Shown one piece after another: positions 18,289 through 52,596 of a stretch of 64,000 bases of DNA. How positions within the stretch are numbered: position 1 is the first letter of the stretch; the number at the start of each line of letters is the position of its first letter. Under the pieces are notes generated by a model. It did no database searches, was not told where the DNA came from, and was given only the letters and a program-made list of their open reading frames with translations. A program made the translations under genes and the position numbers. The stretch covers positions 6,014,001 through 6,078,000 of the forward strand of contig CP075495.1 of the NCBI GenBank assembly GCA_021613535.1, in the 5' to 3' direction. This DNA is from Adineta vaga (taxonomy: Eukaryota; Animalia; Rotifera).

Positions 18289-20271
18289 AAAGAAATTTGA
18301 TTTGAAGATCTTTTTCTCGTTGTTGTTTTTGTTGTTGTTGTATGTAATGCAATGTTGTTTTGTGAGTATCATTGTTATTATAAATTAACTTCTTATCTCA
18401 CTATTTTAAATCTATAAAAATTTAGTCAAATGTTATTATTTTTTTCTTTCTGATATTTTATTGTTTAATCTCGTTCTCTTGTTGTTTGTGAGTAATCGAA
18501 AATCTAGTCAATTTTCTATTGTATTTCTTCATCTATTATTTTCAATTTGTGAATTCTTCTCTTTAAACTCATTTTACGATATCATTGTTGTTCTATTTTA
18601 ATGACGAAAAAAAAAATATATGTTTATATGTTGTCACAGGTACTCATTTCTTTTGATTAATCATTGGTATATTCATATAACTTGATGAATGACAACGAAG
18701 AGAAAAAAACGACAGTGAGAGAGAAAAAATAATCGAAGTATCGTTCTGTCACACATGAATAATTTTACGTTTTTTTTGCTCGTTTTCAGACGCCGTTACT
18801 ACGTTTGAATATATTTTCTATGCTGTCCTTCTATCGAGAAAATCAACATGTTTCGAATGTTATTTCTTCAAGGATAAAACTAATTATTTTATATAAGTAT
18901 GAAAATGACAGAAGAAGTAAAAAAAAACTTTCTCCATGTCTAATGAGAAACCGCAAATCATAGTGAAAGTAAAAAAAAAATTTTATTTAAGTATAGTACA
19001 AATAGTTATAAATAGCGTTTCATTCAAACTACACTAGATTACTAAACATAAAACGGTCAATTTAAATGTATACATTGCAAATATTCTACTCGTATGATTC
19101 GATGAGCAATGGATATATTGTCATATGAAGATATCTAAGAATGATTGATGTTTGTTTGCATAATCAAGGACATGATATTACAAAAGATTAATTCAAGCGA
19201 GTAATCAGTATGTTACATCATTTGGATGTCGAAATATGATCAATGAAAATTTTACATTAAGTTCGATTCGAATAAGAGTCGTATGCCTATTTTGTCAGTT
19301 TAATGAGACAAACACTTTTCCCATCTTTTTTTCTTATTTTTTGATATAGATCAACATAAATCATGTTTTGATTAAAAATACTGTCAAAGTAAACGAAATA
19401 TTTGTACGAAAGTCTAAAACCTTTCATGCATATCAAGTTATTATTCAAATAAAAGAAGGTTTCATAGGCCAAGTATTTCATTCTCAAAAATAAAATTTCC
19501 TTCGATTTATCTGTTCAACTATAGACTTGTTACATTAATGAATGCATTAGTTAGCATTGTTTTCAATGACAAATCATGATTCACTTAATTTTTTCATAAT
19601 TGTGAATGTCGAAATTCAATGCAATGTTTAAAATAAATAAATCAGTTGTGGCATCATTTGATCTGATTAAAACTGCTTAATTCATCCGACTAGTTTATCA
19701 AGTTGAATAAGAAGATGATTAATTTAATCGTTTTTTTTAAATAATAGATTAAAAGAAAAAGAAATAATTTTACAGATTTCTATTTTCAATCGTTAAACAC
19801 TGATATTCGAAGAAAGTTTTGTTTTGCTTCAATAAATGTGAAAAAAAAACAAGGCAAAGAAGTAACAATAAAATAAATCGAACATGAACAAACTATTCTA
19901 CTCTTGACTAAATTCTCTAATCGTCTCTTTGATATCTTTTCACAATTACATACACAAAATGAAAGCCTTCTTATACTAAATTAATAATACTTGAAAGAAA
20001 AGAAAAGAAAGAAATCAACTGACAGTCATTATGTGTATTAAAAAATGAGAAAGAAAGAAAGAAAGACAAAGAACTAGAGAGATTAGACAAATATCAAATA
20101 GGTGTGCATATTCACATATACACACAAAATAAACGCATCAACAAATAAACGTCGAAATGAAATCTGCGCAAAGTAGTGTTAAACAAATTCGTGATTTTTT
20201 TCTGGTAGATAGAAGAAAGAGAGATTGTATCCTCTCAAACGAAAGATAGAAAAAGTTAATATATATTTTCT

Positions 20272-21104
20272 TTAATAGAGAGGTAGACCACCACCTAATC
20301 CACCAAGACTATTACCGAATCCACCTAGTCCACCACCAAGGCCGCCTCCGTAACCACCACCAAGACCGCCTCCGAAACCACCGCCAAAACCTGGAACACC
20401 TGGTATACCACCACCATAAGCGACAGTCATCATCGGTAAGGCCTGATAACCAAGATTGGAACCAAAACCACCTCCGAGTGGAAGACCACCACCAAATCCA
20501 CCTCCTAGTGGAAGACCACCACCACCAAATCCGCCTCCAAGTGGAAGACCACCACCAAATCCACCTCCAAGTGGAAGACCACCACCAAATCCGCCTCCTA
20601 ATGGAAGACCACCACCAAAACCACCTCCAAGTGGTAGACCACCACCGAATCCGCCTCCTAATGGAAGACCACCACCAAAACCACCTCCAAGTGGTAGACC
20701 ACCACCGAAACCGCCTCCACATGGATTAGCTGCTGGTAATGGAGCAGCAATATAAATAACTGGTCGTTTTTGACGACCACCTACTGTTGGAATATAATAC
20801 TCAGTCCATTGTGTTACTGCCCAAGGTTCTTGAACAATTGTTGGTTGTGTAACAATAGCGCCTGCTCCTCGACCACCGTATCCTAAATACAATAATTAGT
20901 AGAATCTTTACATAACTTTATCTTACCTGTATATGGTCCATAACCAGCAAGTCCTGGTTGAGCACCATAACCATAACCAGTTCCATATCTATATTATTAT
21001 CATAAACTATGCTTCGATCAGATAAACAGAATTTAAACTCACTGATTTAAATATGGATCTCCACCATATGCGGCTTGATTTCGTCGAGCTCCTCGATTAC
21101 CCAT
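20272..21104 (-). CDS. Gly-rich repeat protein A (3 coding exons; MGNRGARR N-terminus; 8x GGGFGGGLPL)
   Basis: ATG at 21104: MGNRGARRNQAAYGGDPYLNQ | YGTGYGYGAQPGLAGYGPYTG | YGGRGAG...KRPVIYIAAP...GGGLPLY*. The frame is preserved across two GT-AG introns, and the N-terminus is paralogous to the gene at 23498. Confidence 0.85.
20462..20720 (-). repeat. Coding 30-nt tandem repeat (GGGFGGGLPL) with a 60-nt higher-order unit
   Basis: 20581-20640 and 20641-20700 differ at one base; one unit has an extra Gly codon. Confidence 0.95.
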
Positions 21105-23278
21105 TCTAGAAAAATTTTGTCTACTTAGCAAGTATGTTCGATCGATAAAATATTCTTTCGTATGAATAGAAACAAACCTTTATGTAGTTATTTAGTACTG
21201 ATATTGGTCGTTGATCGGTGTATAACTGATTGTATTATCTGACAAACAAAGAAAAAGAGACAATAGAGAAATGTGAAGAAATATAAATGAGCAATATCAT
21301 TAAGCATAATATGGTATATATGCATATGCAACAAAAAAAACGAAAAAAGAAAGATAAATGAGTGAGGTGGGATCCCTATTTACACGTCAACGTATATAAA
21401 AAAGCTAGATGGGTGATCGATCAATTGGATGCGGTGTTGTGTATCAAATGTTGTATGTGAGCATAAAAAGAAAGACACAGAGAGAGACAGTGAAAGAAGA
21501 AGAAGAGAGAGAGAGAGCAAAATTCGTTTAAAAAAGAAAGGAATAGGAAGCAAAGTAATCAAGGTAAAAAAAGACGACAGCGCGCGGTTACGTGGTATAC
21601 ATGTTGCGGTGTGAGGCAATCAAGCGTAGAATAGTCGTCCCTATATTCGCTCATTTTTTGCGATTAACAAACGTCGTAAGAGTGGTTTGTTGTTCGTATT
21701 ACGAAAATGTTGATTAAAAAAGATTGATAATTTATAATAAATAAAAATGAATCAAAACGAATAGATATAATCATAAAAATTACAACAAAATGTATTCTTT
21801 TTGATGATTAAATAAATATTCTAAACAATCTGTAACAATATTCATAAACAATCACACCTTTGCTAAATATGTATTTAGAATCGAATGATTGATATTATCG
21901 TATGAAATATATATCTATGATATTCTGCTGGGACAAGACATGTGCAAAAGTATACCATCGTCAGTTTGTAAACAACACTTGACCTATTGAATTTTTTAAA
22001 ATATTAAACGATCTAACACATGTTATATGATAATTACGTTGAATGAGAAAGTATAAGATGAATATCGATCGATAAAAATATAGAGAATTCTTATTTATTT
22101 CGAGAATAAGTTTCTCTCCTACAAACTCTTGTCGAGTTATGCATATATCTGTTGACTAGACATCGATTTTTTCTAACAAACAATTTGATCAATTATTTAG
22201 ACTTCTAATGCTTCATGTAAAAATTAAAAAGTAAATATGATTTTATATCCTCTTTAGAATATAATATTGTATAAAATTATATAAATTATTAGAAAGCTTC
22301 TATATAAGTTGAGATTAAATGTTTCATTTAAAATACTAATGATAAATTTATACATCGTCTCAATTTGTTTCTATAAAACTATAGTGTGAGAGTTTATCAC
22401 ACTTCTTGTTTGCGATACGATCAGTAATAAAGGAACTATTCTCTCATATGTTGTTAATGGTCCTTCAGCTAAAAAGAAAACTAGTGAATAACTTAGTGTA
22501 TTTATTTATGCATATAAGCAAGATTTTGTTCTAGTCTAGTACTATTGTTTCGACCTTGAAATAATAGATGATAAATTTAAAAATACAATAGAGCTAAAAC
22601 CACAATAATAATGATCAATAATTAACAAATAAAAGTACTTTTCTCTCTGTCTCTCTCTCTCCATATCTCTCTCCTTATGTAATGTATATCAAGGCATTTT
22701 GTCGACTCATCATCAATAAAAACAATCTCAAGGTTATCATAAATAGTTAAACATACACCGAATAAAATGATAGGATATTACTTTTCCCCGTCTGCCAAAT
22801 CAAACTTATTTTCGCTTATGTGTTTACAGATAAATATATTTATGTGGTTTAACACTGATTTTCGTTTTTTCGACTATTGACGATCATATTCAGGTAACTG
22901 ACACGTCACTTCGTGCACATAGATATGTTTATTCTAAGTAGATAGATTTATGATTGCTCTCTCTCTCTCTCTCTCTGGTTATTATATTAGTAAACTAAAC
23001 GGCCGTGGTTGATAAAAACATCTTTTTCTTTTTTTTGTGTAGATATTACCGCCGTTGATGAAACCTTCTCTTTACGCGTCATTGACTGATGCACGCGTAA
23101 CTCACAGACAAATATGATAAACCAATTGTATTGTATATGCGCCGTCCTTACAGTAAGGGCCGATCGGCGGCGTCTAATTTTTTAGCCAAAAAGCTTCTCT
23201 CTTTTCCCTTTTTCTCTCTATTTTTTCTCCCTTTCTTCTCTTATTATCATCTAAAACGAAAAGGTGAAACCGCTTACC

Positions 23279-23285
23279 TATAAAA
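23279..23285 (+). promoter_or_regulatory. Candidate TATA box of repeat protein B
   Basis: tataaaa lies about 70 nt upstream of the donor (gtaagt, about 23350) of a non-coding first exon and downstream of a CT-rich tract. Confidence 0.35.
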
Positions 23286-23497
23286 TCAGAAACATTTGTA
23301 TTGAATCGATTACTTGAGATCGACAATCGTCATCGTCACTTGGATAAAAGTAAGTATTTAGTGTGATTGCAATTATCATTACTCTTTAGTTTCGTTTCTT
23401 GAGAAGCATTAAAAGTTACCAGTTTCTTCTAACCATACATAACTGATTATACTTATTTTAGGCATTCACGTAGTAGTTTATCGTCAATCAATAAAAT

Positions 23498-25654
23498 ATG
23501 GGAAACCGAGGAGCACGTAATCGACAAGCTGGTCTTCCAGCATACGGTGCAGGATATGATCCATATTATGGAATGGATTACTATGGCGGTGCTTATGATC
23601 CTTATGGAGCTTCATGTAAGTTTGCATAATTTGCAATATCTTGTACATATAAAATATTCACGAATACACTTTCAACATTCTTCTAGATGGTGGTTATCCA
23701 ACTGGTGGATATGCAACAGGTTATGTTACAACAGCTGTTGTTCCAGCTGGACCTATTGGTCGAGGCCCACTTGTTGGTGGCTACGGTGGTCTCGGTGGTG
23801 GTCTCGGTGGTCTCGGTGGTGGTCTCGGTGTTGGTCTTACACCTAAAGTTCGTGCTATCTTCATTCCTCAAGGTGGCGCTGCTGCCGCTCCTTGGTAAGA
23901 TAATTTTTCTGTAGCTTTGCTGCGAGATTTGCTATAAATATACTGCTTTTACGCTTGCTACAGCTGCCCTGCGGTAACACCTATGTTGCCACCACCAATG
24001 CCGGTTACTCCTTGGTAAAATAGCTTCCTTAAGATCATAGATAATCATTTGAAATAACGTATATTTTTCTCGTTTAATAGCTGTCCTGCTGCTCCAATGA
24101 TGCCACCACCAATGCCAGCTATAGGCGGATGTGGTAAGTTTTGAATGAAAGCCAGCATGATAGTTACATTCAATATATACTATGATTTTCATTTAATATA
24201 GGAGGAGGCTTCGGCGGAGGCTTCGGCGGTGGTCTTCCAATGGGAGGTTTCGGCGGTGGTCTTCCAATGGGAGGTTTCGGCGGTGGTCTTCCAATGGGAG
24301 GCTTCGGCGGTGGTCTTCCAATGGGAGGTTTCGGCGGTGGTCTTCCAGCAGGAGGTTTCGGCGGTGGTCTTCCAATGGGAGGCTTCGGCGGTGGTCTTCC
24401 AGTGGGAGGTTTCAGCGGTGGTAAGTTTTTCTTATGAACTAACGTGAAGAATAATATAAACGTAATTCTTTCTAGGTTATGGAGGTGCTAGTCTGATGTA
24501 TCATTCACATTTGTCATGAACACTTTTATAAAGTACGATGAATATTTTATGCAGCTTGATTAGTGATCACGAAAGTATGTCTCAATCACATTAACAATCT
24601 AAAATCGACGATGCATATCTGATGTTTTGATTTGTGAATGATTTTAGGGTGGCGGTCTTGCTTCCTATGGAGGTAACAAAGATTAGCCTTTAATCTTTTG
24701 AATAGGTTAATCAATGGTATTATTTGTAATTTAGGTATTGGCGGCGGTTTCGGTGGTGTTCCATCATTCGGAGGCGGTTTCGGTGGTGCCCCATCATTCG
24801 GAGGCGGTTTCGGTGGTGCCCCATCATTCGGAGGCGGCTTCGGTGGTGCCCCATCGTTCGGAGGCGGTTTCGGTGGTGTCCCATCATTCGGAGGCGGTTT
24901 CGGTGGTGCCCCATCATTCGGAGGCGGTTTCGGTGGCGGTTGTTCCATGGGTAAGACTTTTATATTTCATGTTTTGTCACTATTTGTGCTTAATACTTGA
25001 AGAAATATCGAACTTATAAACTTTTTTATTTTTTTAGGCGGTGCTCCACCTATGGGTATGATACGTTCATTAGAAGCTGTCGGTGCACCATTAATGCAAC
25101 CATACAATCAACTCCAAGCAGCTCCATTTCCACAACCTTGCCCAATTGCTCCACCACCCCAACCATACTTTCCACCACCACAACCATACTTCCCACCTCC
25201 ACAACCACAACCATACTGCCCACCTCCACAACCAATAGCACCACCTCAACCATACTATCCACCTCCACCACCACCACAACCAATCTGTTTACCACCACCT
25301 CCACCACCTCAACAATACTGTCCACCACCTCAACCAATCTGTCCACCACCACAATTCGCTCCACCTCCACCACAATTTCTTCCACCTCCACCACAATTTG
25401 CTCCACCTCCACAACAATTCCTTCCACCTCCACCACAATTTGCTCCACCTCCACCACAATTTCATCCACCTCCACCACCACCCCAATTTATTCCACCACC
25501 ACCACCACCACCCCAATTTATTCCACCACCACCACCTCAATATGCTCCACCACCACCACCTCAATATGCACCACCACCACCACCCCCACCTCAATATGCT
25601 CCACAAGGTGGCAGTGGTCGTATGATTTGCTGCTGTTTTCCAGCTCCCAACTAA
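23498..25654 (+). CDS. Gly/Pro/Gln-rich repeat protein B (MGNRGARNRQ N-terminus; C-terminal GRMICCCFPAPN)
   Basis: In-frame exons 23498-23615, 23687-23894, 23964-24014, 24081-24133, 24202-24420, 24735-24950 and 25038-25654, all GT-AG. Encodes YDPYY, PKVRAIFIP, two CCP..PPPMP exons, glycine repeats and a poly-Pro/Gln tail. Confidence 0.85.
24216..24420 (+). repeat. Coding 27-nt tandem repeat (about 7x GGFGGGLP[M/A/V])
   Basis: Repeated ggaggtttcggcggtggtcttccaatg units. Confidence 0.95.
24740..24940 (+). repeat. Coding 30-nt tandem repeat (6x GGGFGG[A/V]PSF)
   Basis: Repeated ggaggcggtttcggtggtgccccatcattc units. Confidence 0.95.
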
Positions 25655-27852
25655 AAAAGAATTCAGCAATATCATCCGTTAGACTTTTGTTTCTTTTTTT
25701 TTCTTTGCTGTGTAGACACATCTTGCTTTCCTATTTTTTTTCTTGTATTCTGGACTTATAAATTCATCTAAAGTTGTCATTTAATAATAGTCCAATTTAC
25801 AATTAACAAATTACACACTTAATTTAATGAAGAAGAAAATGTTTTCTACATCATCTGTATACATTTCAATCTTGATGATGAATTATAACACTTGTTTTGA
25901 TATTATTTGAAGCATTTCATGCTTCTCCGTTTATTTCATGTTCAAAACGCAATTGTTCTTCATTGTTTTCTGTTAGTATTTTTTCTGTTTCTTTTTTTGG
26001 CATTGAGTGAGTATTTGTTATACTAGTGCAGTTTTAATGTCATATGAAAGAAAAAAAATAAACAAAATAGACTTCTATCCAATCATTTTGAGTATTATTT
26101 TAATTTTCTATTTTAGTAAATAGATTGATATGAATATGCAGTGACTTTATGATTCACATCTGATACTATATATTTATGTATTTAGTTACTACTAAAAAGA
26201 GAGTCAGCTAATTTCAAGGATACTAGTGATGGTTCGTTTCTTTCTTTCTTTTTTATTTCGCCATCATTAAATTATATTTTGATCAAAACGAAGAAAAATT
26301 GGTTGAATATGTGGTTTTGATACCTGTCATATTTGCTTATACATACTGATCGAAGTATCATATATCAAAGACAAACAAGTATTGATGAAAAACAAAATAT
26401 CTGATTTATACTATAGACACTTTACACGCGTCACTAATTTTATGGCTATTAAGAAAGAATATATAGGAGATAGTGATGATAACAATAATGATCTGGGTAA
26501 TTTTCTAAAGGTTATTTATTTTTGACTCGTGAAATTTAATATGACTGAAATCGAACATTTGAATATATTGAAAAAAATTGTAATCAATATAGATCAACAT
26601 TTAATGCAATCATCAAGACAATTTGCAAGTCATAAAAGAAACAAAATGATCATCATTGAAACTTGTCCGATGATATGCTCACGCTAAATAGAAGATGAAT
26701 ACATTTACCTTGAATCTTTTCCTATATGATAGTAGATATGTATCTGTAATATAGTTCAATATGAAGAACTCAAAAAGAAGACTAGTATTTGTCGACTCAA
26801 TAAGCGACTATTCTCTTATAGATATATATAAAGATTTTAAATATAGTGCTTATTAAATATGATACTATTGAAATAATCAATTTATACTTTAAGGCAATTA
26901 TTCGATTACAAAATAAGATTCTATTACGTCTAGTTATTATATAAAGAGCAAGACTTTTTTAACGAATGTTATAATCATTAATTATTTGAATATAATCATT
27001 TTTTTGTATATATTGTTGAAAAAACATCGAAAAAACCTCATTTAGTACTGAATTGAATATGTCCTGGCAATGAGGTGATATTAAAATCTAGCAAACACAT
27101 TTCCTACGGGTTTTTATCTGTATCAAACTATATTGTGCCAAATTTTAGAATAATATAAATAGAAATTCATTTGATGAGAATAATAAACGTAAGATAGATC
27201 ATTTTTTTACTTCACCGGCGGCATAATTATCACATAAGTTTCATTACTTTTGTCACCCTATGTATGGGACGTATATTTTATTTCTTTCTATCATAGTTCG
27301 ATTAGGCAAACAAGCATGCAACTATAGGCAAGGTCTATCACTATAACTCATCATCTTACAGTACGTGAGGTCATCATTGACGGCTGCGAAAAGATCGGCC
27401 AAGAGGCAATTAGAACAGTAGAGCGAAAAGACAACCAAAATGAACGAAAAACTTGTCCCTAGGCAAATGCACTATAGAAGGAAATATATACATGATTGAA
27501 TTGTTTCGAGTAATATCTCTCTCTCTCTCTCGCCTTATGTCTTGATATTGATGGTTCTGCTGCGGTCGATTGATCAGAGAGAAAAAAAGAGAAAGAAGTA
27601 GAAAGAACATATGTGTAAAACCGTTCCAATTTCTCATTTAATAAAGTCGGTTGTTTGCATTTAACTTTAGAACTAGACTGTTCCAAATCAAATTGAAGGT
27701 AAGAAAAATTTAACGAAAATATTGCTTTTAAGTAGTAGTGAACATCTCTTCCTTTGATGTTCTTATTTACTACTAAGTTCCATTATATTTAATTTTTATA
27801 GGAACATATATATATATACATATATATCTATAAATTTACTTGAAACAAGAAA

Positions 27853-30755
27853 ATGGGTAATAACAATGTTCGTAGACAAGGAACCGGTCTTGGTAATTAT
27901 GGTTCGCAATATGATCCATATTATAATTATGGTGATATAGAAAACTATGGTTCCTCTTATCAACCTATTGGAGGATATCCATTTGGTTTCAGCGTTACCG
28001 ATGGACCATTGACAACATCAGCGAAACCTCAATCTGCTGCTTTGGGTGCATATGGTAGTACATATCCAGCAGGTTTCAATCCGATGTTACAACCTGGTCC
28101 GAATGGACCTAAAGTCCGTGTGATATATGTACCTAGTCATATAGCGAATGGTATGCAAAATTTGATTCAACAAGGTGGAGCAGGTGGGATGAATCCATTG
28201 AATGCTTACGGTGGAGCAGGTGGGATGAATCCATTGAATGCTTACGGTGGAGCAGGTGGAATAAATCCGTTGAATGCTTACGGTGGAGCTGGTGGAATAA
28301 ATCCGTTGAATGCTTACGGTGGAGCTGGTGGAATAAATCCACTAAGTGCATATGGTGGATACGGTGGAATGAATCCATTGGTTGGCTATGGTGGAGTTGG
28401 TGGAAATTCTATGGCAGGTGGTTTCGGTGGATATGGACTTCCACAAATGATGCCACAAGTGCCAATATCACCAATGGGTTCAAATTGTTGTTCTTTATCA
28501 ATTCAAGTTCCATCTGCAGCTCCTCAAATGCCGTATCCAATCCCTTGTCCACCACCAATGATTCAGCCAATGATGCCACAAATGTCTATGCGTAAGATAA
28601 TTATTTATCTCTTTATATATTTCCAATAACATAAGCTTTTTAATGAATATTTTAAACGTAACTTAATATAATTACTAATCGAATTACAATGACATCTTCT
28701 CGATCTTTCTTTAAACAATACTAATTCTATTTAGCTTATCCACCAATGATGCCACAAATACCGATTTCACAACCGCTGCGTAAGGAATAGAAGTTGCTTA
28801 TTTTTTTCTTTAAGAAATAACACTAACGCCAGTCGACTGGTAGTATTATTCATGATACCTATTCCTTTTTGACTATAATAGTTTGTCCACTAATAATACC
28901 ACAGATGCCTACCGGTTCAGCTCTGATGCGCAGAAATTATACTATCATCTCTTAGTGCTTTTTAATTAACCATACCATAGTTCATAGTATATCTAAAAAA
29001 TATCAATTAACTATATTTGTTCTATTTTCCGATTTTATAATTAATAGTTGATTCGATCATTTGAATTTTTTTATAGCTTGTCCACCTTTGCTACCTCAAA
29101 TGCCTATTGCACCTTTTCCGATGCGTAAGAAATAGAAAAGAATATTTAGTATGTTGAAATATAGAGTGGTTTGATTTTCTCTTAGCATATCCCCCGGTTA
29201 TGCAACAAATGCCAATTGGTCCACAACCTATGCGTAAGAAATATTATCTACTCATCCGCGAATATTCTGTAGAAATACATTTTATATTAATACTTTTTCG
29301 TCAATTACTAATAGTGACAATAGTATACATAACAATGTCTAACAATCATTTACATTGTTTTGCTTTTTCCCTAGCTTATCTACCAAATATGCCTCAACCG
29401 CCATTTCTTTCTCCCATGCCGATGTTTCCTCAGCAAATACCAATGCGTAAGATTTCATTGTAGATTACACATCAGATTGAAGTTTTTCATGTTGCTTTTA
29501 TTATTTAACTAACAATCAATAACATATTCATATAATAAATTGATTGAATCTATTATTCTTTCATTTAGCATATTCGCCACAGATGTCTCCAATGATGCCA
29601 CAACCAGTACAATTTTTACCTCAATTTCCAGGTGTACAACAACAACAACAACCAATTTATCCTCCAAATTTTCCTGGAGGTTTTAATGGTCTACCTGGAG
29701 TTCAATCGTACGGAGGTATAATTCTATCTCTTCTATCCTCTAAAAAGAATAAAAATTAAGAATGATAATATTAAGTTAATCTAGGTTTCAATCAAGGAAC
29801 ACCGCCGTATGCAAATCTCGGAAATTACAGTGGATTTCCAAGTAAATAAATCCTTCTCTATTTATGAATAAAATATCTTTTTTTGCCATTGTTTTCATTA
29901 TTAAGATATTGGTAGTAATATGATTGCAAATCCAAGTGGTATTAGTCAGCCAGCATACCCTCAACCTGGTCTTGCCGGATATGGTAGTTTTGGATCCAAT
30001 AGTAACTACAGTGTTGGCTTTGGTCAACAAGGGTATCCTCAGCCTGGTCTTGCAGGATATGGTGGTTATGGTCAGTTCCCTTATGATAATTTTAATCAAC
30101 CTATGTATAATTCACTCGATATTTCAGGATTTGGTGGAGCCAATCAATCACCTTATAATGGCTATGGTAACTGTGGTCAACAGTTCGTGGGTGGTTACAA
30201 TCCACAAGGATATAATGCATTTGGTAATTTACCTAACAGTAATTTTATCCAACCAGGTGTCGGTATTAATATGCCGCAGACTCCTTATGGAATCGGTGAA
30301 CCTGGTCTTGCATCGTATGGTCCACCCATTGGTGTCCCTAATCAATCAGGATATAATGGTTATATTCCACAACCATATGGCGCTTTTCAACAGCCGCCTT
30401 ATGGTAGTTATGGTCAACAACTACCTTATGGTAATTATGGTCAACAACTACCTTATGGTAATTATGGTCAACAACTACCTTATGGTAGTTATGGTATGGT
30501 AATTATGCTCAACAACCATTCAGTGGCTTCTCTCAAATTCCTCAACAACCCATTGGTATGTATCCACAACAACCACAACCATCTTTCAATCCATTTCCAC
30601 AACAACCATATAATAATTATCCAGGAGCAAATATGAATTTATTTGGTGGTGTTCCTTCAGGCGGTGGCTTTTCTTCCCCAGGTGGTCCACAATTAATATC
30701 ATTTCCAGGTGGCACTGGACGAGTGAGAATTGTCTGTTGTGCTTTTCCTGAATAG
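27853..30755 (+). CDS. Gly/Tyr/Pro/Gln-rich repeat protein C (MGNNNVRRQ N-terminus; C-terminal GRVRIVCCAFPE), with an apparent frameshift at about 30495
   Basis: Exons 27853-28591, 28735-28779, 29077-29124, 29186-29233, 29375-29446, 29569-29715, 29785-29841 and 29906-30755, all joined by phase-1 GT-AG introns. Shares YDPYY, PKVRVIYVP and the C-terminal Cys motif with protein B. Confidence 0.8.
28174..28389 (+). repeat. Coding 36-nt tandem repeat (6x GGAGG[M/I]NPLNAY-type)
   Basis: Repeated ggtggagcaggtgggatgaatccattgaatgcttac units. Confidence 0.93.
30388..30509 (+). repeat. Coding 27-nt tandem repeat (QQLPYG[N/S]YG x4 plus one truncated unit)
   Basis: caacaactaccttatggtaattatggt units; the last unit (30496-30509) lacks its first 13 nt. 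Confidence 0.9.
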
Positions 30756-32937: not shown

Positions 32938-33560
32938 ATGGGTCATCTATCCCTCTTCACATTTATTATCTTCATTGGTTTAAGTATGGTTATTGCGAAG
33001 AGTGAGGTTAAATTTCGTCATCATCAGCAAAAACGATTCGCCCGAAACAACGAGCCAGCGCGCACTTTACGTAATCTGATAGGAAATCTGATTGACACTG
33101 AAGCAAATATCGTATATACTATAGATGGACAGAAACAAGTCAATACACCAGTACATTCCGATGCCACAACAACAACAGTAAGTCCATTGGCAGCTGTTTC
33201 AGCTCCAAAACAAGAAGAAATGGCTTGTCTTGCTGCGTGTCATTCTTGTCTTCAAGGCTTTTCATTTGTAAGTATATAAATTTATCTTTAGTTTGAGTAT
33301 TTCAATTGTTTTTCCATTAGCATCAGAAGAGAGATGACGATAATTGTGGTCCGATGTGTGATTGTGCCGATCGCTGTTTCTTCATGCCAGCCGAACAGGT
33401 AAGAAAAAACAAAAGATTCTATTTCTTCTTTGGAAATAATCCGTTTTCTTATCTTACTATTTATCAGGTTGGTAATATGTACAATCAAATATCTAGTATT
33501 CGAAATGGTCCTGATTGTTGGTGGAGAAACTATAATGAATTTTTCGCGAATACAAAATAA
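32938..33560 (+). CDS. Secreted Cys-rich peptide/prohormone precursor (166 aa, 3 exons)
   Basis: Exons 32938-33267, 33321-33398 and 33468-33560 (phase 0). Hydrophobic signal peptide MGHLSLFTFIIFIGLSMVIA, KR dibasic site, and a C-terminal 8-Cys domain CLAACHSC...CGPMCDCADRC...PDCWW. Confidence 0.85.
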
Positions 33561-35714: not shown

Positions 35715-37415
35715 TTATGTAATTGAATCCCAATCAAATGCTTCTTCTTCGACAACAATTGGCAGAGGAGAAAACTAAAAGATTTAAATTAAGGATTTTC
35801 GGCATAAAGAATAGAGGAATTACATTGTGAGTTGTTTCTAATACTGTTCGATTCGATACTATGGGTAAACGATTGAATGGTATTGGTTCATCTATAAAAG
35901 ATGATAGTTAATTATTCTAATATGTCATTTGGCTATGAGTTTTAAATAAAAGTTTTATGTTTCTATTTAAACATAAAAAGAATTTTGAAAAGATGACCTA
36001 CGTGAGATTTTATTTGTTGTTAAATTAGTAACACCCGTATAATCAAAAAACGATGAGATCGATGAAGCTAAATTAAGAACTTTATCTCGATCTTGTTGTT
36101 GCAATGTTGAACTTGTTCGATAATTATCTGAAATATTCCATAAAAAACCTGATCGTATTCAAACATATTATTCGTACCACAGTAAGGCTTAACATCGACA
36201 TCATGCCAATTAATTTCACTATGGGATGCTAATTTAAAACTATCAAAGAGAAGATTAGATTCACCATGAGGTAAAAAATCATAATTCCAAGTATTTGTAG
36301 TAGGACTATTTGTGGATGGTGAATCTATAAAAATCTATAAGACATCGTTTTAAATTTTTAACAGAATATATACCTGATGATGGAATCCAAGAATTCGATG
36401 GTGCATCAAGAATTTGTTCACGAAATCGTCGAAATGAAGCCGTTAAATCAATATTAAAATCATCGCATGATAATAATTTTGTCTAAATAAAAAAATCAAA
36501 GGAGATAGATCTTCTTCTTCTTTATTTTCATGTCTATTCTTACATTAGCAATAACAGACTGGTCGTATCTGATTCATCAGCTGATGAGGATTGTCCACCA
36601 ACACTATTAACATCACCGTAGATCACAGGATTTTGATATGAATAAACACCATTTGGTTGTAACTGATGATTATACGGCGAAGAAGATAGAATATCATTAG
36701 ATGCTTGTATTGAATCAAACTAATACGAAGAAAATTAATTAGAAAGATTCTTTCTTTTCCCTTATCTATTCATACTCTTCGTCGACGAGCATTGATTTGA
36801 GTGACTTGTATCAGATTCATCGAGTGCCCAATAAGAACCCTAATATGTAAAATTAAATAAGACGAAACAAACGGTTATGTAAATAGTTTTACTTTGCCAG
36901 GATCATCTGAACTTCTTTGAAGTCGTTTAAAACATCTATTTAAAGATAAATTATGTCGAATTGAATTCTAAAATGATAATGATTATGTTTCAAATTTACT
37001 AAACAAATCTCTATCGAACCTTCCATTTAGGTGGTGCTGTTCGAAAATATGGATATGATTCTAAAATCCATTGATAAATTTCATTCAATGTCATTCTTTG
37101 CATATCACCATTTAATATTGCTTGTCGAATTAACGTTACATAACTGTATGGAGGTTTAACATGTACTGTTGATGTTGGTAATTCAACATCGTTTGCTTCT
37201 ACTTTATATTGAATATTTGCTATGGTCGATGACGTTGTTGGTAATGATGTTGAATCTGGTGATGGCTGTTTCGGAGATGTTGTTGATGGTGTTGAATTTT
37301 CTCCTATCTGCATTTTTGGTAACCAATCCATAGATGTTAAACTACTATCTAATGGTACACCATTTGTTGTTCTACCTATTCCTTTCTTTTTACTTGATGA
37401 TTTTCGGACAAGCAT
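35715..37415 (-). CDS. FOXJ3: Forkhead transcription factor FoxJ2/3
   Basis: N-terminal [12 protein letters not shown] motif; forkhead domain [14 protein letters not shown]...[10 protein letters not shown]...WK|[15 protein letters not shown]...DPGK|GSYWALD; C-terminal [11 protein letters not shown] characteristic of FoxJ2/3. Confidence 0.92.
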
Positions 37416-41251: not shown

Positions 41252-43058
41252 ATGCCGAAAAAACCTATGAACTCCGTGCACAATGATTTTGAAATTACAA
41301 CTAATGATCGAAGTGAATTGAAACGTGTGTCATCAACAACGAAAAGAAACAAACAGTCCGGATCAACTGCAAAACGTTATAAATCGCTACTAATATGTGG
41401 TGTTTGTGAAGGTGATGCTCATGGTAAGTGAACAAATGAGATGAATTTGTACAAGAATATATCTTGATGTTTATTTCTAGGTTATAACTTTGATGCAATT
41501 ACCTGTGAATCATGTAAAGCATTCTTTCGTCGAAATGCATTGAGACCAATAGTAAACATTGAATGAAAGCTTATTTCTTTTTTATTTAATATTTATTTAG
41601 GAAAAATTGAAATGTCACGGAAATGGTCAGTGTAGTGTCAAACATAATATAAGAAAACGATGTAAAAAATGCCGTATGATGAAATGTATAGATATTGGTA
41701 AGAGAACAATGAAATTCATTTGTTAAATTATGCATAGAATATCATTATATTATACTAGGTATGCGAAAAGAATGGATTTTAACCGATAAAGAGTAAGTAT
41801 TGAAACAGTAAAGATGATTGAAATAGTATAATTAGTTAGGACTTATCTGTATTTCGAGTGCAGAATGCTGATTTGTTATCATCAATATTATCTTTATGTG
41901 AAGGAAAATATTTTCATGAAATTATGCAATTTTTCTAATTTTAAAAATGAAGAATCGATATGATGTTTATTCACTTCAGAAATATATAATAAATCGTGAT
42001 GCTCGGCTCACATCTTAATGAAAAAATAGTCTTCGAGAATGTTCTTATCAGTTTTCCTGCTCATGGTAATAAATATTCTATTTTTATTTATTTGACTTAC
42101 TTTCAGACGAGAAGAAAAACGCGCTAAAATAGAAGAAAACCGTCAACTCCGAGAAACTCAAGATAATCATCTAGAGCGATTTCCATCAATAAGGGTTAGT
42201 TTGTTTATCCAAAAGAAAAAATACATTTCAACTTAACCCATCATTCTATTACATTTCTAGTCAAACACTAGTGACAGTGATCTCTCATTAGATTTATCAC
42301 TCTCATTTGAACCAGAACTTTTAAATGAAATCGATTGGCTTATGATTCGATTCATTCAAGATTATTATGTTCAAGCTGTGAAACTCAATGAAATATCAGG
42401 TATTGCATTTTATCCTTTAACTCAACCGATTGAATCAACTGAAGAATTACTTCGTATTCCACTCTACATCTCTGCAATGCGACTCATTAATTATATCAAA
42501 CAGACAAATGAATTTCAACAATTAACAAGCAATGATCAACTTTATCTTATCAAATCAAATCTATTAACAACTTGTTTCTTCCATTCAATATTTATTTATG
42601 ATCCAAGAACTGATTGTTATCATGAAGAAAATACAACTGATCCATTATTTTCAGGAAAAGATTGGGTGAAAACATTCAATAAACATTTCCATATAGAAAT
42701 GAAACAATTAAGAAAGGATTTCATTGATATATTTCAATTAGATGATATTGTAATCAAATTATTTCTTTTAATTATCATATTTTCAACTCGAATACCATTG
42801 AATGAATGTCGAGAATACTCATCGGCATCTGTAATCAATAATTCATTAGATATATTCAAAGCACAAAGTATATTTGTAGATTTAGTTTATCGATATTGTA
42901 TAAATCAATATGGAACATCAAAAGGATGTACGATGTTTTCACGATACATACTCAAGTTAATGAAATTACAAGATTTAGTTGATGCTATTAAACATGGAAT
43001 CGATAATTATGTGAATATTGAACAAGTTTCGCCATTGATGAGAAGTCTTCTGGTATGA
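41252..43058 (+). CDS. Nuclear receptor, NR1J/HR96-DAF-12-like, copy 1
   Basis: C4 zinc fingers CGVCEGDAHG|YNFDAITCESCKAFFRRNAL...RKRCKKCRMMKC..IG|MRKEWIL. The LBD exon ends QVSPLMRSLLV*. The start codon is somewhat uncertain because a splice acceptor lies just upstream. Confidence 0.9.
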
Positions 43059-45611
43059 TTGTTATGGCATATAGTTAATGTTTCCACAGTCGTCGATTCA
43101 AGACAAATTCATATCAGATATGAATTTACTGAACGAACTTTTAGTCGAACGTTATTTATTGTTGTTGTTTTTTTCATAGATAAAACTGAAATAGAAACTT
43201 CGTGTTTTATTCGTTACATTTATTATATTTTATTGTAGAGCGTAGACGAACAGATTTATTGAAAGTAAAAAATAAAGATGTACATTTCCAAATAATCTTC
43301 TATCTAACTAATACTAAAAACTTAGTAAAGACTTTTTATAAATACTATCTGGCAATTCAATAAAGTACTACACAATGATGTTTTAATAACAACTAATCAA
43401 CATAGGAATTTCATTATCGTTCTTAGCATTGATAGAATCAACACGACAGAACTTTTGTTCTCCATCAATCAAGTCTTGTTCCATCAAATTTGATAACAGT
43501 CTATATTTATTATGTACGAGTTGTGAAAGAGTTTTGAAGAATTTTATTATTAAAATTACTATCTAAGTGAACAGAATCATTGGCACAAAAAACGGTATAA
43601 ATCTCTATGCGATGTTAATTGTTGAGAAATTGTAATATATGTGTATATAATTCAGAAAGAAGAACTCATTTAATTCGTTCTTACGTTTGAATTGTTGTAT
43701 TTTGTCGTAGGTATTATCTTCAAATGTACATCTACCCCTATCGACATGGTTAAGGATTACGGAATATCCTTTTCTCACAGTGTCATATCCTTATTCCTTG
43801 AAAAAAGAGGGCAAAAGTAATTAAATTTTCGTCCGAAGTATAGATTACTATACTCTATGAACGATAAATATTTTATAAAATCTCCTGCTGGAGAGTTCGA
43901 GAAATGAACATGTTCTTTTTTTCAGGAAGGCCTCAGAATTTAGAATTCTACAGTTGAACAAAACAAACCTCAGAAAAGTTTTAATATAAATTTGTTCAGG
44001 CTTTAATAAACTTTCATAATATCCTATATTTTCTTCATGAATATGAATGCACAGGTATTTCATTGCAACTATTATTGATGAATAGATGAAAACCTAGAGA
44101 AATTTATGGAGGTATTGCGTGTTAGAATACGTTTTGAAGAGAAATAATACTAATATAAGAATTGAACACTGAAATTTAGAGCGTGAAACGTATTCAATCA
44201 TTTTTCAATGATATAATCTCGGCTGTTAAAATATTTTTCTTGAATTTTGTTATTTGAGATTCTTTTCGTGTAAGCGTGATCGATGCCGATATATACGTGA
44301 AAATGTTCTATATTCTGGGAACAATTCATCAAACATTCTTAGTTTTGCATGTTGAAAGAAAAACCACTTCAAAATAATCTTTAAAAACAACGTCTCCAAG
44401 GATCAATAATATCACAGTCGATAGCTGTAGGTAGGTAAAAGCAGAAGATCTCTTCACGTGCATTTCGCTTTTAGAAAGTAGGCCGTAGATATACAGGTAA
44501 AAAATAAAAGCATAGTCAAGAAACATGTTTATCAATCGGAAATAAATTCTATTCTAACTTACAGACAGACAAACAGTTAACTTAGATTAAAAGAGAACGA
44601 GTTTTATCTTTTAAGACTTATCTATTTTGTCTTATATGACATTTTTAATATAAATGTCCTTTTCAGTTTCTCATAAACGTGTATCTGGAAAATTTTATAG
44701 TTTCATTGTAATTTATAAAAGGAATATATCTTGGCGACTTGCTTTATTATTCATTAATTCAATTTTTCAGTAATTCTCTTTGCTAATGTCGAAGAAATGG
44801 AAACAGGATATTTTTCTTGGAACTTCAGTTAACTGAGTCGTTTCTTCTCGGAAGTTCTATAATAGAATGTATCTCTGATGGTGAGGATAGTTCTCAAGTA
44901 CATCGAGAAATCACATCAAACATATCAATTTCGAAGCTATTCATCGAGTATTTATAATAAAGAAATTACATTATTGATGTGTTTGGTTATTTGAGAATTA
45001 GTCAGGTTTAGATATATATATTTTTACAAAACTATATTTATATCAACATATCAACATCACTATTTCTGTTTTCATTTAACTTATTTATATATCATAGATT
45101 ATGTTTCAATTATGCATGGAAATCTAATAGATTACACATAAGAAAATGGAAGTTTTCTTTTAATTAAAGATCTAAAACTAAGTTGTGACATGCCATAGGA
45201 GATGGACGGAACGATCTGCTCTACATCAAGAAGAATAGAACGTAGTCATGTCAATGTCGAAGATTGTATTAGTCATACGTTGTAGGAAAGGAAGAGAAAA
45301 AACATTCTTACTGGATGCCCTGTTCTCGAAATGCAGTGTTAGTTATCGAGACACCATTGAAGACTACTGCATTCTTTTCCTCCATCTGACGTGTCTTTTT
45401 TCTCTTTCTACTCAGATGTGTCATTATTGTGTATGCGTATGCATGTTTTTTTTAAATGTATATTCGACCTCTTTCGATAAGGTTCGAGAATAAATTTTAG
45501 TATAATTTCGACGAACTTTTTTATTATTGAGTATTCATTTTAGATCTGATGAATATCATCGTGCCTATTCAGAATTACTTCTGCTGAAAAGACAAGTAAA
45601 ACTGGAATAAA

Positions 45612-48109
45612 ATGCGTACAGATACGGACAATCATCTATTAAATATTGGTTTTGATGATAATGATTACTCAAAGAATTCATCATATGATGCACCGAAAAA
45701 TGAAGATAAATCATTAATCAAACGTTCAAAACCAACATTAACCTGTATCGTTTGTGGAGATCATGCTTTTGGTAACAATGAAGATTTATTGTTTTCTAAT
45801 ATAATTTATTTTATCTTTTTATTAGGATACAATTTTGATGCTATATCATGTGAATCCTGTAAAGCATTTTTTCGTCGTAATGCATTACGTCCACCGGTAA
45901 TATTCATTTACTGATGTTCTTTTTCTAAAAGAAATATTTTAGTTATATCGATCAACACGAAAATTAAGTTCTTATCATCAAATGAAGGAACAGAAATAAA
46001 TGAGCTAGTATTTTCAAAAAGTTTCTTCCGCTATCGTCACACATATCTATGAATTGTAATTATGTTTATTTTGAAAAGATTATATATATATATATATATA
46101 TAATGATCTTTAGTCTAATTTCATATGCAACATTTATATCTACAAACGACTTCACCATTATAAACTTTGTTTTTTCCTCTATTTTCAATTGAATCTATCA
46201 AAGAAAATAGCGAAGATGCATTGAGCTAGGATATTTTCTTTACTGATTTCTAATGACATAATGTGAAGTGAAGAGAAAGATTGACATAAAAGTAACAGTT
46301 GTTCTGTTTACATCAGTTATGTAATGCATAGTTCTATGTCAAAATATCCATACTTAATCATAATTTGAAATCTTTTGAACATAATATTTCAGAATAACTA
46401 TTAATTCTTACAAAAGCGTGCTTAAGATCTTTACAACTATTTATAGTTACTCTCGCACATTGAATGTACTACCTTCTAATTTAATCTCTTCTTAATTGAT
46501 AGAAAATCTGTGAAAATGCATGACAATACAAAACATTCTTCGATCATAATTAAGTTTTTGATATAGAAATAGTGTTTTTTAGATCTTAGCTACTCGACTA
46601 ATTTCTAACTGTCTGTTATTGAAGCGACTTGCGCGTTACACATTAGCAAAATAAATACAGATTATTAATATATTGATAAGATCGTTGTTACTTTCATTTC
46701 GAAATTGAAAATAAAATTAATGCTTTGATTTTCATGCATAGAAACTTTCCGTTCACCAACAACATCGATTCAAATCAGTAATAAAATTTCTAACATATTT
46801 TTCTAATTGTAGTTTAGGAAATCAGATGAATTAACACTCAATGAACATTTGATTAGGTAGAAAAAGTTTTTATATTTCTCTATTTTAGGGTAAGCTTAAA
46901 TGCCGTGGTAATGGTCATTGTGAAGTAACCGTTGAAAAAAGAAAACGATGTAAAAAATGTCGATTAGACAAATGTTTTCAAAAGGGTAAATAGATAATTT
47001 GATTTTGACTGGTTTGTTTTTCAAAAACATTGGAATTTGTTTTTGATAGGTATGCGTAAAGAATGGATACTTTCTGAAGAAGAGTAAGTTTTATGGACGA
47101 GTATTAGATTGTATTTATTGACAGAATTTTCTCTAGAAAACATCATAAACGAAGTAAAATTGAAGAAAATCGTCGTCAAAAGGAGACAAATGAGAATGGT
47201 GTAGTTCGCCATCGACGAAATCTGAAATTAGTATGTTTTCTTTAACGAGAATAAGAATATTCTTTTGAAATAATCATTTCAATCATTTAGATTAAAGTTC
47301 AAAATACTTCACCTAAAGATGAATCTTCTAATCAAATACATGATGATGTTCCACCAATGACAGATATGGATTGGATCAAAATCGAACAAGTTCAAAATGC
47401 ATACAGTCAAGCTATTACATTGAATAAAGTCATCGGTGTTCCTCTATATCCCGCAATACAACCAATACGATCAACACTTGAACTTATTCGTATTCCAACT
47501 TATTTAGCATCGATTCGTCTTATCACATTTATCAAACATATACCTGAATGTGGTCTATTTCATCCTGATGATCGTGTCGTTCTTGTTAAATATAATTTAT
47601 TAGCAGTAGTTTTTATGCATTCTGTCCTATTGTATAATCCAATAGCCGACACATATCATGAACACAATACCGAAGATCCGATATTTCAAGGAACAGATTG
47701 GATCAAAATATTGGGCAAAGAATTTTATCATGAGTTAACAGACCTAGCAACAAAATTAATCGAAATAGTTGAATATGATCGTGTAATTATTAAAATATTT
47801 TTATTACTTATTCTTACAACAAAGGGATTTTGTGGCTATGATATTGTTCATGAACCATCGTTGAAAAACTTTTCCAGTGTCTTTAGTACTCAAAATGTTT
47901 ATCTAGATACACTATATCGATATTGTTTACATCACTATGGTGAAAAAACAACAGTTAATATATTTTCGCGTACAATTGGTCCATTAATGTCTATTCAACG
48001 ATTAGCTGTACATTTGAAAGACTTTGTACATGATCATGTTGATCCATCACAATTATCACCATTAATGCAAAGTGTTTTACAATTGACTGATTCCGATTCT
48101 CAAGATTAA
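45612..48109 (+). CDS. Nuclear receptor, NR1J/HR96-DAF-12-like, copy 2
   Basis: CIVCGDHAFG|YNFDAISCESCKAFFRRNAL, an intron of about 1 kb, then RKRCKKCRLDKCF.KG|MRKEWIL. LBD at 47357-48109 ends QLSPLMQSVLQL. Confidence 0.92.
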
Positions 48110-51653: not shown

Positions 51654-52596
51654 AAACTGTCTATAGAGTTGTTGTTGTTGTTTTTTCTTTTTCGTTTGGT
51701 GTTATTTATGTTTTTTTATTCTACTTTTCTTCTTAGTGAAGAGATATTTAATGAGTCTCATTATATGTTTATATTAAGTGGAAAGCTATTTATTAATTTA
51801 ATTTGTATGCATACTAAACAGGATAAATGGATAGAACACCAAGTATTTCTTTTTAAAGCAAATATGTACTTTTTTCGATGACAAATGATTCATATACCAT
51901 AATTGAAATATCTGACACGATTACGTCACTAATATTAGAAGAGTCTCTTTTTTATTAAGTGCTCAAATGCTACATTTAATTGATGTTATTTTCATTAATG
52001 AACGGACATATTGACTGTCTTCTTTCGCTTGAATACATGTTTTCCACCTCTAAACATAGAAAGAAGAAAAGCATACTATTTATCTTGTTTACTTCTTTAG
52101 CCTATTACATATGTATGATAGTATCTTTCTGATCGATTTATAAAGTAAGAATTGTTATTTATTAGAAAGAAAAAAAGTTATTTTGCGTACTAATTGTCAT
52201 TCATTATTAAATATTCAATGATTTAAAGTACTATGTTTCTATTTGCTCCAATTCTCTCTGGTAGAAAGATTAGTCCGTGTTAAACACACGTGCACATAGT
52301 TTGCTTTCAATGCATCTATATTTTCTCTCATTTTCTCTTTTCTAGACTTTTTCTTTCCTCTCTTTCTATTACCCCATATAACCCCTTCATACGTTACTAC
52401 GTTTTCTTCTTTCCTCTCGCCATACTTTCGTGATAAACTCAGTTAGTGTCTTGTTGAGTTGATGTGAGTATGCGTACATATGTAAGCAATGGATGTTCTA
52501 ATTATTTTGTTGAAATTAGGTTTTTTTTTGAATTTTTTCAGTTAACTGTTAAAAGCAAACGTATCTTTTTCAAATTAAAATATTTTCTTATCTACG

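Follow-up and report, generated by a model that had tools for sequence, protein, structure and literature searches.

The 64,000-nucleotide (nt) stretch of Adineta vaga contig CP075495.1 analysed here (the window, to which all coordinates refer unless a contig is named) carries at 20272-30755 a cluster of three spliced genes, G1, G2 and G3, in the order G1 <- -> G2 -> G3, as obtained by reading the sequence and locating the splice sites. Their products are almost uncharged, cytoplasmic-type proteins, predicted to be disordered, in which Gly/Pro/Tyr/Phe/Gln repeats stand between short conserved anchor motifs. Judged by sequence comparison, the family is new, has no name and is traced so far only to bdelloid rotifers. 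The window has a GC content of about 29%, and the three repeat-rich genes are the exception to its AT-richness.

G1 is located on the minus strand and encodes 244 amino acids (aa) in three exons. G2 (plus strand) encodes 493 aa in seven exons within 23498..25654, with GT-AG at all junctions, and G3 (plus strand) about 683 aa in nine exons within 27853..30755. All three proteins start with Met-Gly-Asn and arginines (MGNRGARRNQ, MGNRGARNRQ and MGNNNVRRQ, respectively) and contain an N-terminal YG..DPY module and a short motif, KRPVIYIAAP in G1, PKVRAIFIP in G2 and PKVRVIYVP in G3, after which gene-specific repeats occur. In G1 the motif is followed by ..NPC, GGGFGGGLPL repeats and the end GGGLPLY, without a CC tail. 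In G2 two Cys-Cys pairs follow, one Cys codon per pair being split across an exon junction, and then GGFGGGLPM, GGGFGGAPSF and PPPPQ[FY] repeats up to the end GGSGRMICCCFPAPN. G3 has CC about 115 residues beyond PKVRVIYVP and ends in GGTGRVRIVCCAFPE. Both tails are of the GRxxI(V)CCxFP type, and the N-termini of G2 and G3 align with E = 2e-7. With this alignment and conserved homologues of each gene elsewhere, the pattern lies far above chance. A six-frame motif scan of the window found no family member besides G1-G3.

The original prediction, made from the sequence alone, had described three neighbouring spliced genes with these MGN starts, the DPY module, the short motifs, Cys or Cys-Cys and two CCxFP ends, and every string it quoted is present. 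In G3 the Cys-Cys pair does not adjoin the short motif and stands at the distance given above. The prediction did not mention the frame break and the GC donor of G3 or the exon relics in a G2 intron, which are described below.

The protein repeats are encoded by DNA tandem arrays with units of 21-42 nt and 84-97% matches. The exons are as follows; loci or contigs with related genes are cited by L numbers and related proteins by P numbers.

21043..21104, minus strand: G1 exon 1, MGNRGARRNQAAYGGDPYLN, Q codon split at the junction; the intronless homologue contig L001 and protein P0001 verify the junction after LNQ
20927..20988, minus strand: G1 exon 2, Tyr/Gly module with QPGLAGYG motif, contiguous in P0001
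20272..20882, minus strand: G1 exon 3, invariant core EPWAVTQWTEYYIPT..RPVIYIAAPLPAANPC, then NLGYQALPMMTVAYGGGIPG, C-terminus LPLY; 36 invariant columns in 10 sequences
within 20272..20882, minus strand: G1 exon 3 tandem array, 30-nt GGGFGGGLPL unit, 8.5 copies
23498..23615, plus strand: G2 exon 1, MGNRGARNRQ..YGAGYDPYYGMDYYGGAYDPYGAS, 72% identity to the G2-like exon 1 of L014
23687..23894, plus strand: G2 exon 2, GYVTTAVVP, GGLGG repeats and PKVRAIFIPQGG motif, the latter kept in L017, L031, L012-L014 and L023
23964..24014, plus strand: G2 exon 3, mini-exon (C)CPAVTPMLPPPMPVTP
24081..24133, plus strand: G2 exon 4, mini-exon (C)CPAAPMMPPPMPAIGGC
24202..24420, plus strand: G2 exon 5, 27-nt GGFGGGLPM unit, 7.7 copies
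24735..24950, plus strand: G2 exon 6, 30-nt GGGFGG[AV]PSF unit, 6.5 copies; homologous exon in L027
25038..25654, plus strand: G2 exon 7, MGMIRSLEAVGAPLMQPY.., Pro/Gln/aromatic/Cys repeats, tail GGSGRMICCCFPAPN; tail kept in L027, L028, L031 and L014
27853..28591, plus strand: G3 exon 1, MGNNNVRRQ..YDPYYNYGDIENYG..PKVRVIYVP, later MGSNCCSLSIQVPS..PCPPPMIQP; 85 invariant columns in 5 sequences
within 27853..28591, plus strand: G3 exon 1 tandem array, 36-nt GGAGGxNPLNAY unit, 6.4 copies
28735-28779, 28882-28929 (GC donor), 29077-29124, 29186-29233 and 29375-29446, plus strand: G3 exons 2-6, mini-exons
29569-29715 and 29785-29841, plus strand: G3 exons 7 and 8, Pro/Gln/Gly/Tyr-rich
29906..30755, plus strand: G3 exon 9, QPGLAGYG motifs, 27-nt QQLPYGNYG unit with 3.7 copies, tail GGTGRVRIVCCAFPE; frame interrupted at about 30496/30497

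Relatives, selection and gene order

An exhaustive profile (hidden Markov model) search of 1.84 billion representative proteins delivered 19 matches at E <= 1e-3, of which 18 are credible and one is a spurious bacterial match. A search of this kind had been suggested with the original prediction; it gave no assignment to a known family with another function. The G1 exon 3 core as query found nine proteins with 72-83% identity, and the invariant columns of the ten-sequence G1 alignment include EPWAVTQWTEYY.PT, RPVIY.AAP and Gly positions, with NLGYQ.LPM.T..YGGGIPG and the C-terminal LPL[FY] near-invariant. Relatives of G3 exon 1 share 63-69% identity across the first 110 aa. Because the relatives are only about 66-71% identical to the window in their DNA, this conservation of motifs indicates selection on the protein.

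The G1 homologue P0001 is encoded in full length and without introns on seven contigs of 1.2-1.3 kb in Logan (runs SRR14765263-73). These contigs, e.g. L001, span both G1 exon junctions and include 5' and 3' untranslated sequence with an in-frame stop upstream of the ATG. For these reasons they are read as cDNA; as such they support the Met-Gly start and the two splice junctions of G1, and also transcription of the homologue in a relative. The ATGs of G2 and G3 likewise have in-frame stops ahead of them in the same exon. A whole G3-like gene was found on the genomic contig L009, with a last exon of about 640 codons in one frame through GSSGRVRIV at the contig end.

No candidate homologue came from a search with the unique start of the G2 last exon; relatives of G2 were found later via synteny. 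A metagenome scan with the C-terminal 85 aa of G3 gave pattern matches, none of which was confirmed. The searches with G2 and G3 were run exon by exon, so that full-length relatives derived from transcripts may have fallen outside the length window of the word-index search. BioProject PRJNA962496 (RNA-seq of A. vaga desiccation) lists only the BioProject and biosamples and is not linkable to the runs of the homologue contigs. A literature search on rotifer integument, glycine-rich proteins and cell atlas data gave no description of the family.

Several family matches are annotated genes without a name in Rotaria assemblies, and all traced public genome assemblies are from Rotaria. Table 1 of Nowell et al. 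2021 (PMC7943196) assigns GCA_905251635.1 to Rotaria sordida, and GCA_905261645.1, GCA_905319835.1 and GCA_905273325.1 to R. magnacalcarata. Locus L014 comes from GCA_905332035.1, which lies outside that table and has an accession and contig prefix of the same series as the Rotaria assemblies. The G1 orthologue changes much faster in Rotaria-type loci than G1-type proteins found in metagenomes.

Head-to-head pairs of short G1-like and G2-like genes occur in L031 (R. magnacalcarata), L012 and L013 (R. sordida), L014 and L023. Their G2-like genes carry ..PPK[VI]R[VA]IF[IV]PQGG.., with ..GRMICCCFPAP[NQ] as the end in L031 and L014. Among metagenome contigs, L017 has a G1/G2 head-to-head pair with a spacing of about 2.3 kb as in the window, and on L027 and L028 the G2-like end lies 2.2-2.3 kb upstream of the G3-like start, again as in the window. 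L014, which contains the complete set of three genes, runs collinear with the window in inverted orientation, from an amino-acid permease gene through G1, intergenic blocks and G2 to G3; the permease gene of the window is located at about 15.05-18.26 kb (Pfam AA_permease, E = 6.6e-6). The G3-like gene of L014 starts with MGGRNARAQ, has a single uninterrupted last exon and ends in GCSGRVRIVCCAMPE. In L029 a G3-like gene ending in GSTGRVTIVCCAIPQ is followed by a homologue of a small signal-peptide protein of the window (32938-33279).

The cluster, its order and both tails are thus kept in relatives and predate the split of these lineages. This gene order, together with the small number of credible relatives, bears out the original description of a clustered, lineage-specific family. 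The conserved non-coding features are the following.

21105..23497, no strand assigned: G1/G2 head-to-head intergenic region; divergent layout and spacing also in L017, L031, L012-L014 and L023
about 23252-23356, no strand assigned: conserved non-coding block with TATAAAA-like element and (CT)n tract, kept in L017 and L014
27473..27617, no strand assigned: conserved non-coding block and (CT)n tract upstream of G3; related blocks upstream of the G3-like genes of L009, L026, L027 and L014

The last block is probably a promoter or a non-coding first exon. That the head-to-head and tandem arrangement is conserved, and the intergenic blocks with it, suggests that the three products are expressed and assembled together. 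Tracts of (CT)n/(GA)n lie a few hundred bases upstream of G1, G2 and G3 (21480-21530, 22640-22670, 22950-22980 and 27515-27535) and recur upstream of the G3-like genes of L026, L027 and L029. They may be a shared promoter feature; a search for k-mers common to the three promoters found only the (CT)n tracts.

The small protein downstream of G3 (32938-33279) has a signal-peptide-like start and no Pfam match, and it occupies the same position in L029 (5582-6049). A Methyltransf_8 gene is located between the permease and the G1-like genes in Rotaria loci (L014 10771-11981, L031 6747-7914); in the 2-kb gap of the window at 18300-20270 it is found only as faint tblastx traces. Further downstream the window contains a forkhead gene (37011-37415, minus strand) and four or five nuclear-receptor-like genes in tandem (42342-54215). 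One of these has a zf-C4 match at 50133-50477, and the ligand-binding-domain-like open reading frames (ORFs) are too divergent for Pfam.

In the last exon of G3 the reading frame changes at the end of the 27-nt tandem array (97% matches), and both frames around the break are open and have the same composition. Testing of candidate introns by translation found a GT..AG pair at 30494..30624 (131 nt) that restores the G3 tail. The homologous exon is uninterrupted in L009 and L014, and the C-terminal part read in L029 ends in the same tail. Because the stretch skipped by the 131-nt intron is coding in L009, a frameshift in this G3 copy or a repeat assembly error is more likely than an intron. The mini-exon 28882..28929 has a GC donor instead of GT (donor at 28930).

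G3 exons 2-6 are all phase-1/phase-1 and hold one P[YC]PP.MPQ.PI..PM-type unit apiece. These Pro/Met/Gln units, single mini-exons in the window, form one long exon with many more copies in L029 (1983-2795) and L014 (1465-2985). The contrast points to intron gain or loss, or to tandem duplication of exon plus intron inside the repeat array. The G2-like gene of L027 has at 56-581 about five tandem units of about 112 nt, each resembling a mini-exon plus intron, and the window equivalents lie inside single exons. Within the 314-nt G2 intron 24421..24734 two exon-like stretches with AG/GT borders are out of frame, one of which would read GGGLASYG; they are probably decayed repeat exons.

The frame break, the GC donor and these exon relics could be taken as signs of non-functional low-complexity ORFs or decaying pseudogenes. 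We consider this hardly credible, as motifs, frames, gene order and termini are kept in many relatives at the DNA identity given above, and a homologue is found on intronless cDNA-like contigs. For G1 and G2 such a reading is already contradicted.

Repeat unit and copy number vary freely among relatives, and composition and anchor motifs stay fixed. Examples are GGGFGGGLPL versus GGFGGGFPAT, QQLPYGNYG versus GQPGYGQQPFGGF, and VPVPVP in one G2-like gene. Free change of repeats at fixed composition fits a bulk material better than a motif-specific adaptor array.

Protein character and family searches

Glycine makes up 41% of G1; G2 contains 28% Pro and 24% Gly, and G3 is rich in Gly, Pro, Gln, Tyr and Asn. 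Each protein has 7-8 Lys plus Arg, mostly Arg with only 1-2 Lys, and 3-8 acidic residues, so that about 2-4% of residues are charged. Cysteines number 1 in G1, 12 in G2 and 8 in G3. The Kyte-Doolittle mean over 19 residues reaches a maximum of about 1.0 across the three proteins and the N-termini are polar and basic; hence G1-G3 have no signal peptide, as originally proposed, and no membrane span.

AlphaFold2 models are essentially without secondary structure. The mean pLDDT was 43 for a natural full-length G1 homologue (10-sequence alignment) and 34 for G3 exon 1 (5 sequences), with a single low-confidence helix of 12 residues. In Pfam the eight exon translations matched no family at E <= 1 except for a sub-threshold PGRS repeat match of 14 bits, and neither Pfam nor NCBIfam matched the exon translations or the homologues. 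Profile searches of PDB sequences with the G1 and G3 alignments gave no significant match, the lone one being Seh1 (E = 0.065, non-significant) within a Gly-rich stretch. The statement that no named family is recognisable is thus upheld in Pfam, NCBIfam and PDB. Rfam and tRNA scans of the window gave no useful result.

Several candidate identities were rejected. A CYSTM tail-anchored protein (PF12734) has no Pfam match here, and the low hydropathy and a tail of merely 6-8 residues past GR speak against it. The same hydropathy maximum excludes a membrane-spanning protein. Loricrin, SPRR or another cornified-envelope precursor was found neither by Pfam nor by PDB profile. A transglutaminase substrate does not agree with the few lysines and with termini that are not rich in Gln/Lys. 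For an FG nucleoporin Pfam found no nucleoporin domain, and the Seh1 match is not significant.

LEA/CAHS-type protectants were rejected because of the low charge, the absence of helices other than the low-confidence one and the lack of an LEA match in Pfam. A more general version of this idea is that the proteins are soluble or gel-forming protectants of anhydrobiosis, which condense or vitrify on drying and shield membranes and cytoplasm, with ends that only tune localisation or turnover. The predicted full disorder, the sticker-and-spacer repeats and the restriction of traced members to bdelloid rotifers, which are desiccation-tolerant animals, agree with it. High charge and amphipathic helices characterise the known desiccation protectants (LEA, CAHS), whereas G1-G3, with their low charge and abundance of Gly, Pro and aromatics, would be poorly soluble. 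The Gly2 plus basic start, the interfacial Trp/Tyr motif and the CC tails would also stay unexplained. We therefore regard a protectant role as improbable.

Export from the cell is less probable still. Repeats like those of secreted elastomers and glycine-rich structural proteins, among them abductin-like GGFGGxGGG, could belong to extracellular structural or adhesive material (eggshell, trophi or pedal-gland cement), released by non-classical export or by means of an unrecognised upstream signal-peptide exon. A signal peptide is lacking, however, and the ATG of the cDNA-like L001 is closely preceded by an in-frame stop, with such stops also before the G2 and G3 ATGs; nor would conservation of Met-Gly make sense if a signal peptide came first. 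A secreted glycine-rich or elastomeric protein was rejected as a candidate identity for the first two of these reasons, and we give extracellular material very little credence.

Lipid-anchor-like ends and a putative submembrane matrix

Of 34 distinct N-termini in the family, 32 have Gly2, including those of G1, G2 and G3 of the window. G1-type starts are MGNR[AG][AGQ]R, G2-type starts are MGNRGA, MGGRQA and MGNRVN, and G3-type starts are mostly MGN[NR]N[VI]R, with Ala at position 6 in 5/12 and Val or Ile in 7/12. Fast-evolving divergent G1 orthologues of Rotaria include MGNHTSQ, MGNHASQ and MGNQTSQ, which are of the type of classic N-myristoyltransferase (NMT) contexts. The PROSITE myristoylation pattern PS00008 is G-{EDRKHPFYW}-x(2)-[STAGCN]-{P}; checked by hand, it is passed by 11/12 G1-type, 3/3 G2-type, 4/5 divergent Rotaria-type and 5/12 G3-type N-termini.

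At the other end GR[LM]ICCCFPAP[NQ] was found at five loci and GRV[RT]IVCCA[FIM]P[EQ] at three, plus the truncated L009 copy. Both CC tails are kept across different species, which supports the terminal Cys clusters of the original prediction. Among G1-type proteins ..AAPLPAANPC is nearly invariant. The tails of G1-G3 contain neither a CaaX nor a terminal CC/CXC prenylation motif, and because the CC tails fit no prenylation motif, S-acylation or disulfide formation are the plausible chemistries. From this pattern of conservation the lipid-anchor-like ends are under selection; myristoylation of Gly2 and S-acylation of Cys are predictions from sequence patterns.

We tentatively read G1-G3, with slightly less than even confidence, as cytoplasmic, N-myristoylated and probably S-acylated low-complexity proteins that would build a submembrane matrix. 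In such a mechanism NMT would acylate Gly2 during translation, arginines at positions 4, 7 and 8 would strengthen the hold on the acidic inner membrane leaflet, and the interfacial aromatic/hydrophobic motif would add to the tethering. The Cys beside the PKVRxIYxP / RPVIYIAAPLPAANPC motif and in the GRxxICCxFP tail could be S-acylated or disulfide-linked, and G2 and G3 would be pinned to the membrane at both ends. Aromatic and aliphatic 'stickers' (Phe, Tyr, Leu, Met), regularly spaced in Gly/Pro 'spacers', would make the proteins self-associate on the cytoplasmic side of the membrane, as a two-dimensional gel or lamina that is both dense and flexible, with the three proteins being co-expressed and co-assembled.

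A more specific proposal, which we consider rather unlikely, is that G1-G3 are structural proteins of the rotifer intracytoplasmic integument lamina, which is the structure that comes to mind first. Doubly lipid-anchored and self-associating, they would line the apical membrane of the syncytial epidermis from within as an intracellular 'skin'.

Several observations weigh against these proposals. Seven of the 12 G3-type N-termini, including that of the window with its Val, fail PS00008 at position 6, and Gly2 is lost in two Rotaria-type G1 orthologues, which start with MNRRPGQR and MSRSRQ. The myristoylation-type start of the original prediction therefore stands for Gly2 in nearly all members, and falls short for most G3-type proteins and these two orthologues. 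G1 has one Cys and no CC tail, and stable disulfides are unusual in the cytoplasm. The G3 of the window carries the frame break described above. The intracytoplasmic integument lamina is a trait of all Syndermata, yet every named organism in which the family was traced belongs to Rotaria, a bdelloid, and there are no more than the 18 credible relatives. Transglutaminase chemistry of the cornified-envelope type, which the original prediction had allowed for, is unlikely because Lys is nearly absent. The two orthologues without Gly2 (L014 9971-10069 and P0025) end in ..RFR or ..RYF instead of LPL[FY].

Proteins of this kind could alternatively act as adaptors of membrane traffic or repair, with arrays of Pro/Tyr-rich short linear motifs on a myristoylated scaffold, e.g. 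PPxY for Nedd4-type WW domains and YP/PGY for ALG-2/annexin-like partners. PPQY does occur three times in the G2 tail region, and QPGLAGYG and YPQPG tracts, which resemble Pro-rich regions of annexin A7/A11 and ALIX, recur in G1 and G3. The idea is weakened because the PPxY motifs of the window G2 are not conserved, the G2-like exon of L027 having PPPPPVQY and VPVPVP instead, and the freedom of repeat unit and copy number to vary while composition is kept also speaks against it. We judge an adaptor function to be quite improbable and prefer the submembrane matrix.

The functional interpretation given with the original prediction is thus partly supported by the sequence comparisons: it is reasonable in outline and unproven. 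To our knowledge no genes have so far been linked to the molecular composition of the rotifer integument lamina, and the literature search found nothing contrary. The cluster offers concrete candidates for lamina proteins, which are material-like and cytoplasmic-type, have membrane-attachment-like ends and keep their order between bdelloid lineages. The family may have been missed because the 7-8 Lys plus Arg, mostly near the ends, leave trypsin almost no usable peptides, and because low complexity defeats standard annotation. Should the integument turn out not to be involved, the family is still a clean natural case of lipid-anchor motifs combined with sticker-and-spacer repeats and shows fast repeat turnover around fixed anchor motifs.

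Comparison with known systems

Src, MARCKS and ARF-type MGN anchors share with G1, G2 and the divergent orthologues Met-Gly-Asn, Ala/Gly/Ser/Asn at position 6 and arginines within eight residues. They differ from the G3-type, which has Val/Ile at position 6, and have no common fold or domain with the family.

The GGFGGxGGx, GYGG, PGxG and QQ-PYG units and the very low charge are also found in abductin, elastin, resilin and the high-Gly-Tyr keratin-associated proteins. The first three are, unlike G1-G3, secreted and cross-linked extracellularly, whereas keratin-associated proteins are small, encoded by a single exon and need a keratin partner. All these elastomeric and Gly-Tyr-rich proteins lack the conserved rotifer N- and C-terminal motifs, and there is no Pfam match.

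Aromatics in a Gly-rich context drive the formation of hydrogels and condensates, and in this respect G1-G3, with PSFG-like units in G2, resemble FG-nucleoporin and FUS-like domains (LARKS-type GFGG/GYGG). They differ in having no pore-anchoring or RNA-binding domain, in spacers of Gly/Pro instead of Ser/Thr/Asn/Gln and in their lipid-anchor-like termini.

The cornified-envelope precursors of the vertebrate epidermal differentiation complex (loricrin, SPRR, LCE) are likewise encoded by clustered genes, have no signal peptide, and combine Gly runs broken by aromatic or aliphatic residues with Pro/Gln/Cys repeats. Their site of deposition is the cytoplasmic face of the plasma membrane, a location that is predicted for G1-G3 as well. 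There is no sequence relationship by Pfam; the rotifer proteins have 1-2 Lys and are without Gln/Lys transglutaminase end domains, their coding regions are multi-exon, and the myristoylation-type start and CC tail are absent from loricrin and SPRR.

The membrane-skeleton proteins of protists (articulins, epiplasmins and alveolins) form a lamina directly under the membrane and have low-complexity repeats rich in Val/Pro or Gln/Pro/Tyr, as does one G2-like exon with VPVPVP. GAP45 and the ISPs of Apicomplexa, dual-acylated proteins of the inner membrane complex, have a Met-Gly start and carry myristate and palmitate. Homology to G1-G3 is not detectable, repeat units and motifs are different, and with animals on one side and protists on the other a likeness, if real, would be convergent. 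By analogy, a lamina of the G1-G3 type would be convergent with both vertebrate cornified envelopes and protist pellicles.

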